A stretch of 64,000 bases of DNA from the sequence record OQ921725.1, one strand, 5' to 3'. Shown in pieces: positions 10,132-10,168 of this stretch. Within the stretch, counting starts at the first letter, position 1, and every line of letters begins with the position of its first letter. The position numbers and the translations under genes were made by a program. The notes below the pieces were generated by a model that was given only the letters and a program-made list of their open reading frames with translations, had not been told where the DNA came from and did no database searches.

Positions 10132-10168
10132 GGTGCGGCGCGGACTCATAATCCGTAAGCCGTATGCC
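10132..10168 (+). ncRNA. Free anticodon stem-loop (CAT) on a helix without D or T arms
   Basis: TGCGGC-GCGGA-CTCATAA-TCCGT-AA-GCCGTA. Confidence 0.45.

Follow-up and report, generated by a model that had tools for sequence, protein, structure and literature searches.

The E. coli thrS operator is an mRNA leader that carries a mimic of a tRNA anticodon arm and is bound by an aminoacyl-tRNA synthetase. In yeast, HisRS and MetRS are reported to bind anticodon-arm mimics in mRNAs (PMC6542539, PMC7797078). Such mimics lie in the leader of a regulated mRNA, are read by the protein that normally reads the copied tRNA, and serve feedback control. The hairpin considered here, H1 of Streptomyces phage Frankenweenie, resembles them in being a non-tRNA hairpin that copies the anticodon stem-loop of one tRNA. 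It differs in its location within an array of phage tRNA genes and in copying a tRNA of the host, and no one gene follows it consistently in all lineages.

The tRNA cluster of phage T4 encodes two stable non-tRNA RNAs, species 1 and 2 (rnaC/rnaD), which are made from the same precursor as the tRNAs. Like the spacer RNA that contains H1, they are small structured RNAs encoded between tRNA genes; we know of no anticodon-arm copy in them.

Phage tRNAs might also take part in conflicts with the host. T5 tRNA-Lys is reported to counter the tRNA-cleaving PARIS immunity (PMC11464382), and phage tRNAs have been hypothesized to evade host tRNases (PMC10264068). Counter-defence tRNAs and H1 share their place in a phage tRNA array and a logic of conflict over anticodon loops. 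However, the former are complete, decoding tRNAs whose loops differ from those of the host and so escape cleavage, whereas H1 has no tRNA body and a host-identical arm, which would be the opposite strategy (bait, not replacement).

Two further systems involve tRNA mimicry by other RNAs. Bacterial and phage Y RNAs carry a tRNA-like domain bound by Ro60 (PMC4201824); like H1, they are non-coding RNAs that mimic tRNA, and Frankenweenie itself encodes Ro60/TROVE. What Y RNAs mimic, however, is the acceptor, T, and D portions of a tRNA, whereas H1 mimics the anticodon arm. The HIV-1 TLE is reported to bind LysRS via an anticodon-like loop (PMC5113203). Here too a virus copies an anticodon loop, and the TLE engages a host tRNA-binding protein; unlike H1, it is part of the genome RNA of a eukaryotic RNA virus, where its purpose is primer placement. 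In the literature, no description was found of body-less anticodon-arm copies in phage tRNA arrays.

Position and fold of H1 in the tRNA array

The window, i.e. the whole stretch of DNA analysed, comprises 64,000 nt of record OQ921725.1 (window position = record position minus 124000). Frankenweenie belongs to cluster BM and is a lytic phage with a 200-kb genome and S. scabiei as isolation host. Its tRNA array consists of 11 tRNA genes on the plus strand at 9509–12208 (ARAGORN and Rfam), downstream of the replication genes and in the same orientation. At 10054–10128 (plus strand) it includes a tRNA(CAU) that is elongator-Met-like (ARAGORN, Rfam); between this tRNA and the small gene 213 (10284–10406), the record carries no annotation. 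Two features were noted at record positions 91339–91581 (outside the window) and 123497–123802: Ro60/TROVE, whose open frame spans 621 aa, and a RelE-like toxin, annotated a short way upstream of the window.

The relatives compared were Kela, JustBecause, Satis, Kradal, Quantum, and EhyElimayoE from the phage collection, together with sequences from IMG/VR and metagenomes (among the lineage labels, L002 is Kela, L003 is Satis, and L181 is UViG_3300043313_002728). Pattern scans of viral and metagenome contigs and a neighbour-protein search for more distant homologues returned only the BM-cluster clade; the same search yielded one further relative, which does not have the hairpin element. Gilson-type phages have the tRNA-Met in common and lack the hairpin.

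H1 occupies 10133–10165 on the plus strand, directly downstream of the tRNA(CAU), from whose 3' end it is separated by a conserved linker, GAAG (10129–10132, plus strand; GACG in L019). Folds and compensatory pairs define a lower helix of 7 bp (GTGCGGC, 10133–10139, with GCCGTAT, 10159–10165, including two G:U pairs), a junction with an AA bulge on the 3' side (10157–10158), a 5-bp upper stem (GCGGA, 10140–10144, with TCCGT, 10152–10156), and a 7-nt loop, CTCATAA (10145–10151). In a single-sequence fold, H1 alone has an MFE of -15.7 kcal/mol (z = -2.6). Its upper part is a canonical anticodon stem-loop, with a 5-bp stem, a 7-nt loop, a pyrimidine at position 32, U33, and a purine at position 37, and the sequences flanking this arm pair with each other. 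The first-pass annotation had proposed a 5-bp/7-nt anticodon-type stem-loop 4 nt past the CAU tRNA, and the sequence and ARAGORN show it to be real; the lower helix, counted there as 6 bp, actually has 7, two of them G:U.

H1 is not a tRNA: a cloverleaf with acceptor stem, D arm, and T arm (RF00005) is not found. No D or T arm is present, as had been claimed at first; there is no Rfam tRNA match (RF00005) across 10129–10290 even at E ≤ 10, and ARAGORN makes no tRNA call at H1, relaxed thresholds included. A known RNA family is equally rejected, the Rfam matches over the region at E ≤ 10 being to tRNAs only. A Y RNA or YrlA finds no Rfam match in the region either, and the weak YrlA matches fall on real tRNAs. 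As for an intrinsic terminator, the terminator scan is empty at H1, and the sequence after the hairpin reads GCCAGCAG. No promoter was found at H1, and inspection of the nearby sequence by eye gave no convincing kissing partner for its loop.

The shape of H1 alone is unremarkable: outside its tRNAs, the window has about 0.31 hairpins of the anticodon type (5 bp, 7-nt loop, Y-U-NNN-R-N) for every kb of each strand. What raises H1 above chance is its covariation in relatives together with the 17/17 identity of its arm to a host arm.

The stem-loop had also been described as free. However, RNAalifold applied to nine sequences predicts H1 as the first helix of a structured spacer RNA of ~135 nt. 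On the plus strand, H1 is followed in this model by a middle hairpin with a conserved GGACAGA loop and covarying stems (10166–10209) and by an almost invariant 3' domain (10211–10265) with a 10-bp hairpin at 10211–10248. In this domain, GTCCC (10229–10233) could also pair with GGGAC (10261–10265) across a variable linker, forming a possible pseudoknot. Covariation is lacking in 10211–10265 because its sequence is invariant. This block of ~55 nt is better conserved across lineages than the tRNAs and has no Rfam match; it is followed directly by tRNA-Lys in Satis and by the SD of gene 213 in Frankenweenie. An HDV-like ribozyme fold, considered by eye for the 3' domain, was rejected, as the strand order is unfit and there is no space for P3.

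The two feet of H1 carry invariant motifs, an SD-like GAAGG and GUAUG, and an AUG (10164–10166) lies in the 3' strand of the hairpin. A start at this AUG could lengthen the annotated 40-codon gene 213 by 40 codons (frame 10164–10406). H1 might accordingly be read as a translational operator or split ribosome-binding site, in which the hairpin would join the SD-like GAAGG to the AUG and control the frame into gene 213, possibly through a protein that reads tRNA arms and binds here, as happens in the thrS leader of E. coli. The invariant feet fit this, and the frame is open in six of nine lineages: it joins gene 213 in Frankenweenie, Kela, L020, L026, and L036 and stays open to the end of the locus in L006. 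It fails in others, with a stop immediately after the AUG in Satis and a frameshift in L011; in L019 it is open but enters a different reading frame, not gene 213. Open frames of such length are, moreover, common at 66% G+C. At the covarying RNA pairs, the predicted peptide is not conserved, and the only two changes within the invariant 3' domain are both non-synonymous, with none synonymous. This pattern of change argues for RNA rather than protein constraint; a coding cause of the spacer conservation was rejected on these grounds, and control of a downstream frame is regarded as very unlikely.

Low-depth assembled contigs from two RNA-labelled public libraries cover 10044–10264 with at most one difference; DNA carry-over is possible there. 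No phage-infection RNA runs were among the public runs found.

The copied host arm and other tRNA-like elements

The upper stem and loop of H1 (10140–10156, plus strand; loop CUCAUAA) reproduce exactly, over 17 nt, the stem-loop that bears the anticodon in Streptomyces tRNA-Ile2(CAU). In tRNA-Ile2, the anticodon CAU is converted to lysidine-AU by TilS, and the tRNA reads AUA. Exact copies of the 17-mer are present in more than 120 bacterial genomes, with many from Streptomyces, Mycobacterium, and other actinobacteria; all the copies inspected (~40 distinct contexts among those listed) form the anticodon arm of a CAU tRNA. Its central 15-nt pattern was matched in all 151 of 151 sampled Streptomyces genomes; among the matches listed for this pattern, nearly all are the tRNA-Ile2 arm, usually in single copy.

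The CAU tRNAs of Streptomyces fall into three kinds: an initiator in multiple copies, one elongator-Met-like tRNA, and tRNA-Ile2. The nearest E. coli relatives of the host tRNA-Ile2 are the chromosomal tRNA-Ile(CAT) genes, but assignment by BLAST to E. coli alone was ambiguous for the other Streptomyces CAU tRNA. The identities were settled with the published M. smegmatis sequences of tRNA-Ile2, the TilS substrate used in that work, and tRNA-Met (PMC12514573, supplement). Body and arm of the Streptomyces tRNA-Ile2 match the M. smegmatis tRNA-Ile2, the arm being 16/17 identical, and the other single-copy CAU tRNA resembles the M. smegmatis tRNA-Met.

The likeness of H1 to tRNA-Ile2 runs a few bases beyond the arm into the 3' flank (GCCGT), which indicates that H1 descends from a tRNA-Ile2 gene. 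The sequence points to an origin in which the arm was kept and the 5' side came to pair, after remodelling, with what had been the variable-loop/T-stem segment.

To place this identity among all host arms, all 47 distinct anticodon arms of one Streptomyces genome, plus their reversed sequences as controls, were scanned against both strands of ~160 kb of non-redundant sequence from the phage and relatives (~180 kb scanned, the window overlapping two other targets). Outside genuine phage tRNAs, only H1 and the Satis version of a second hairpin matched a host arm over at least 13 nt; the reversed-arm controls gave 0 matches in the same scan. The 11 genuine phage tRNAs differ from the host arms of the same anticodon at 2–10 of 17 positions, including several differences in the loop (positions 32, 37, and 38), as against 0 of 17 for H1.

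The second hairpin (11465–11484, plus strand; CCG-T-GGT-CTGAAAA-ACC-CGG) had been put forward at first as another anticodon-loop element. Its coordinates and sequence are correct and it is real and conserved, but it is the weaker case: the upper stem has 3 bp, followed by a bulged U and 3–4 more pairs, so that it falls short of the 5-bp stem of a canonical anticodon stem-loop, and the loop shows GAA or GCA depending on the lineage (CUGAAAA in Frankenweenie, Kela, and L019; CUGCAAA in Satis). In Satis, the stem is also different, with GGC/GCC in place of GGU/ACC, and the hairpin copies the core of the host tRNA-Cys; the Frankenweenie stem matches none of the 47 host arms. RNAalifold places the second hairpin within a predicted long-range helix of a ~190-nt structured block, and this helix lacks covariation support because its sequence is invariant.

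The same conserved ~190-nt block holds an unannotated tRNA-like RNA (11531–11628, plus strand; RNAalifold) with a covarying acceptor stem and T arm and without an anticodon arm. Its acceptor, GCGCGTG/CTCGCGC, is fully paired in Kela and Satis and reads GCTCGGG/CCCGAGC in L019; its middle is a long arm and a short hairpin.

Several other tRNA-like sequences were seen in the window and its relatives. In Kela, an interrupted tRNA body lies at 1636–1806 between tRNA-Arg(ACG) and tRNA-Asp, and Satis has one in the same place; it has an acceptor, a D arm, and a T arm, with ~100 nt in place of the anticodon arm. The Kela copy receives no ARAGORN call and a 24.9-bit Rfam match to its 3' part only, and the element is missing from Frankenweenie. 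In L181, a tRNA-like sequence with a long variable arm (4790–4905) lies upstream of the homologue of gene 220, at the position of the Frankenweenie tRNA mimic; it has an acceptor GGAGAGA.../...TCTCCTC and a good T arm, again with no ARAGORN call. In the 267-nt spacer between tRNA-Pro and tRNA-Thr of the window, ARAGORN at relaxed settings weakly calls a tRNA-like sequence whose 'anticodon' has 2 bases (9791–9861). Lastly, a 5-bp hairpin at 9966–9982 shows CAU within its loop, UUCAUGC. The acceptor stem of tRNA-Thr begins with the five bases that make up the 3' strand of this hairpin, which may represent an alternative pairing between leader and acceptor.

Conservation of H1 and its place among trailer hairpins

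Six distinct versions of H1 occur in the BM-cluster relatives, and each alone folds into a hairpin of 7 + 5 bp with a 7-nt loop (z-scores from -2.6 to -4.2). MAFFT and covariance-model alignments were set aside because they misplace the lower helix of Satis and L019; pairs were therefore counted on a manual structural alignment together with single-sequence folds. On this alignment, 5 of the 12 pairs, in both helices, show compensatory change, and none is broken. Each variant has 2–4 G:U pairs, all of which would be mismatches on the minus strand, so the structure is that of a plus-strand (tRNA-sense) RNA. The junction between the helices is variable (0/2, 0/1, 1/2, or 2/2 nt). Five of the six variants have the loop CUCAUAA, and L019 has CUCAGAA. 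The three central pairs and 6–7 loop bases are fixed across all six; conservation of the loop by itself is not significant (1 of ~15 substitutions in the loop, p ~0.12).

H1 is independent of the CAU tRNA, as it is kept in lineages that lack it: tRNA(CAU) is missing in Kela, JustBecause, L011, L034, and L019, where H1 directly follows tRNA-Thr with the same linker. The arm is unchanged across Frankenweenie, Kela, L178, L011, and L020, while real tRNA arms differ at up to 10 of 17 positions (rough p ~0.02 for such invariance across these five lineages against real tRNA arms). In Satis and L019, pairs 27:43 and 31:39 are not those of the host arm, and the identities to host tRNA-Ile2 are 13/17 and 12/17, respectively; these 4–5 arm changes are pair-preserving apart from one loop change. 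Exact mimicry is thus not universal, and the L019 loop matches no host arm. The idea that CUCAGAA copies the host tRNA-Leu(CAG) was rejected, as no match was found.

Between the two outcomes envisaged in the first-pass annotation, a conserved loop with covarying stems or a full tRNA at this place in related phages, the comparison points to the former. No relative examined has an intact tRNA at the H1 position; the more distant relatives L181 and L183 have a protein-coding ORF there instead. This absence, together with the compensatory changes, argues against random decay. The initial suggestion of a remnant of a deleted tRNA is thus half right: H1 is tRNA-derived, with a likeness that extends into the 3' flank, but with 0 broken pairs it has not decayed at random. 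A neutral, now functionless remnant of a tRNA-Ile2 gene could draw on this ancestry, on the coming and going of tRNA genes in the array (e.g. the presence or absence of tRNA-Met), and on the lack of the element in the distant L181. It would nonetheless have to explain five compensatory pairs in both helices over six variants and an arm whose conservation equals or exceeds that of functional tRNA arms; it is disfavoured and hardly credible.

The main rival comes from the array itself. Nearly every array tRNA, in every lineage, is followed within 1–6 nt by a strong hairpin that covaries between lineages, both in the spacers of the window (9585–11440) and in L002, L003, L019, L020, and L011. Several of these trailers start with CUGG or CUGC, and some of their loops are conserved too, e.g. 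a C-rich loop after tRNA-Trp. Since H1 stands at the same post-tRNA position, it could be an array trailer hairpin of tRNA ancestry: the leftover arm of a lost tRNA-Ile2 gene, reused to aid processing of the precursor, to protect the 3' end, or to insulate adjacent tRNA folds from one another, with a loop sequence that has no role of its own. H1 lies exactly where such a trailer is expected, after tRNA-Met or, where Met is missing, after tRNA-Thr; its loop and two stem pairs do vary among Satis and L019, and the 3' flank that is still like tRNA-Ile2 is consistent with a reused relic. What a generic trailer leaves unexplained is that the arm keeps its 17/17 host identity in five lineages despite changes in the lower helix and in real tRNA arms, and that the three central pairs and 6–7 loop bases are fixed in six variants. 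On balance, it is considered rather unlikely.

Possible partners and function of the mimic

H1 is a selected plus-strand RNA hairpin that copies the anticodon arm of host tRNA-Ile2. Its function is a more tentative matter. The preferred reading, held with a confidence that falls just short of even, is that H1 acts as a tRNA-derived anticodon-arm mimic that engages a protein reading such arms, i.e. TilS, an anticodon nuclease, or MetRS. The tRNA-Ile2 arm, set on a new 7-bp helix, would form a tRNA-derived RNA module. H1 is presumably transcribed together with the tRNA array as the first helix of the ~135-nt spacer RNA, and would present the arm to its reader protein, titrating that protein or absorbing its activity. 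That the same phage also encodes Ro60 and a tRNA-like RNA without an anticodon arm is counted as supporting mimicry.

The candidate partners are, in order, host TilS, a tRNA-targeting defence nuclease, and MetRS. MetRS reads CAU. In type I TilS, CTD2 contacts the acceptor stem, and type II TilS is without CTD2 (PMC12514573). The Streptomyces TilS has 342 aa and consists of only the PP-loop and TilS substrate domains, with no CTD2, i.e. the short type II form. The copied tRNA decodes AUA, depends on TilS, and is present in single copy, and host-like arms are avoided by the tRNAs that the phage itself encodes. ATA codons number 0.19 per 1000 in the phage vs 0.87 in Streptomyces samples; with almost no AUA codons in its genes, the phage could tolerate disturbed AUA decoding.

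A specific case of the mimic reading, rather than a competitor to it, is the anticodon-nuclease decoy, in which H1 would be cleaved by, or would block, a host defence RNase directed at tRNA-Ile2 or CAU tRNAs, so sparing the host tRNA. This case takes a minor share of the confidence given to the mimic as a whole. It shares all the evidence for mimicry. The divergence of the 11 phage tRNA arms from the host sequences is in line with the idea of tRNase avoidance (PMC10264068), and against such divergent arms, a host-identical arm without a tRNA body would be a plausible bait. On the other side, the phage genome encodes neither RtcB nor an RNA ligase of the T4 or Rnl2 type, and this lack of recognisable tRNA-repair enzymes gives no indication of anticodon-nuclease pressure; the phage does not encode a TilS either. 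We know of no nuclease that targets tRNA-Ile2 in Streptomyces. Further, the phage would gain little by protecting tRNA-Ile2, as AUA is hardly used. The evidence does not favour an anticodon nuclease over other arm-reading proteins.

The broader proposal that H1 belongs to a sponge RNA is distinctly doubtful. Such an RNA would titrate the type II TilS or bait a tRNA-Ile2 nuclease, host AUA decoding would fail, and the phage would be unaffected. The failure would also hit AT-richer, horizontally acquired defence genes of the host, and the phage would be spared because AUA has been purged from its own genes. If this were true, H1 and the anticodon-less tRNA look-alikes would together resemble a modular tRNA-mimicry toolkit.

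Current accounts of phage tRNA arrays invoke codon supply or the replacement of tRNAs cut by host defences. As an anticodon-arm mimic, H1 would suggest a third possibility, namely that proteins reading anticodon arms are baited or titrated by phages. H1 also supplies a search rule applicable to all phage genomes, i.e. exact host anticodon arms outside tRNA genes. Even if H1 is only a relic reused as a trailer hairpin, it still shows tRNA genes decaying into structural parts of tRNA operons.
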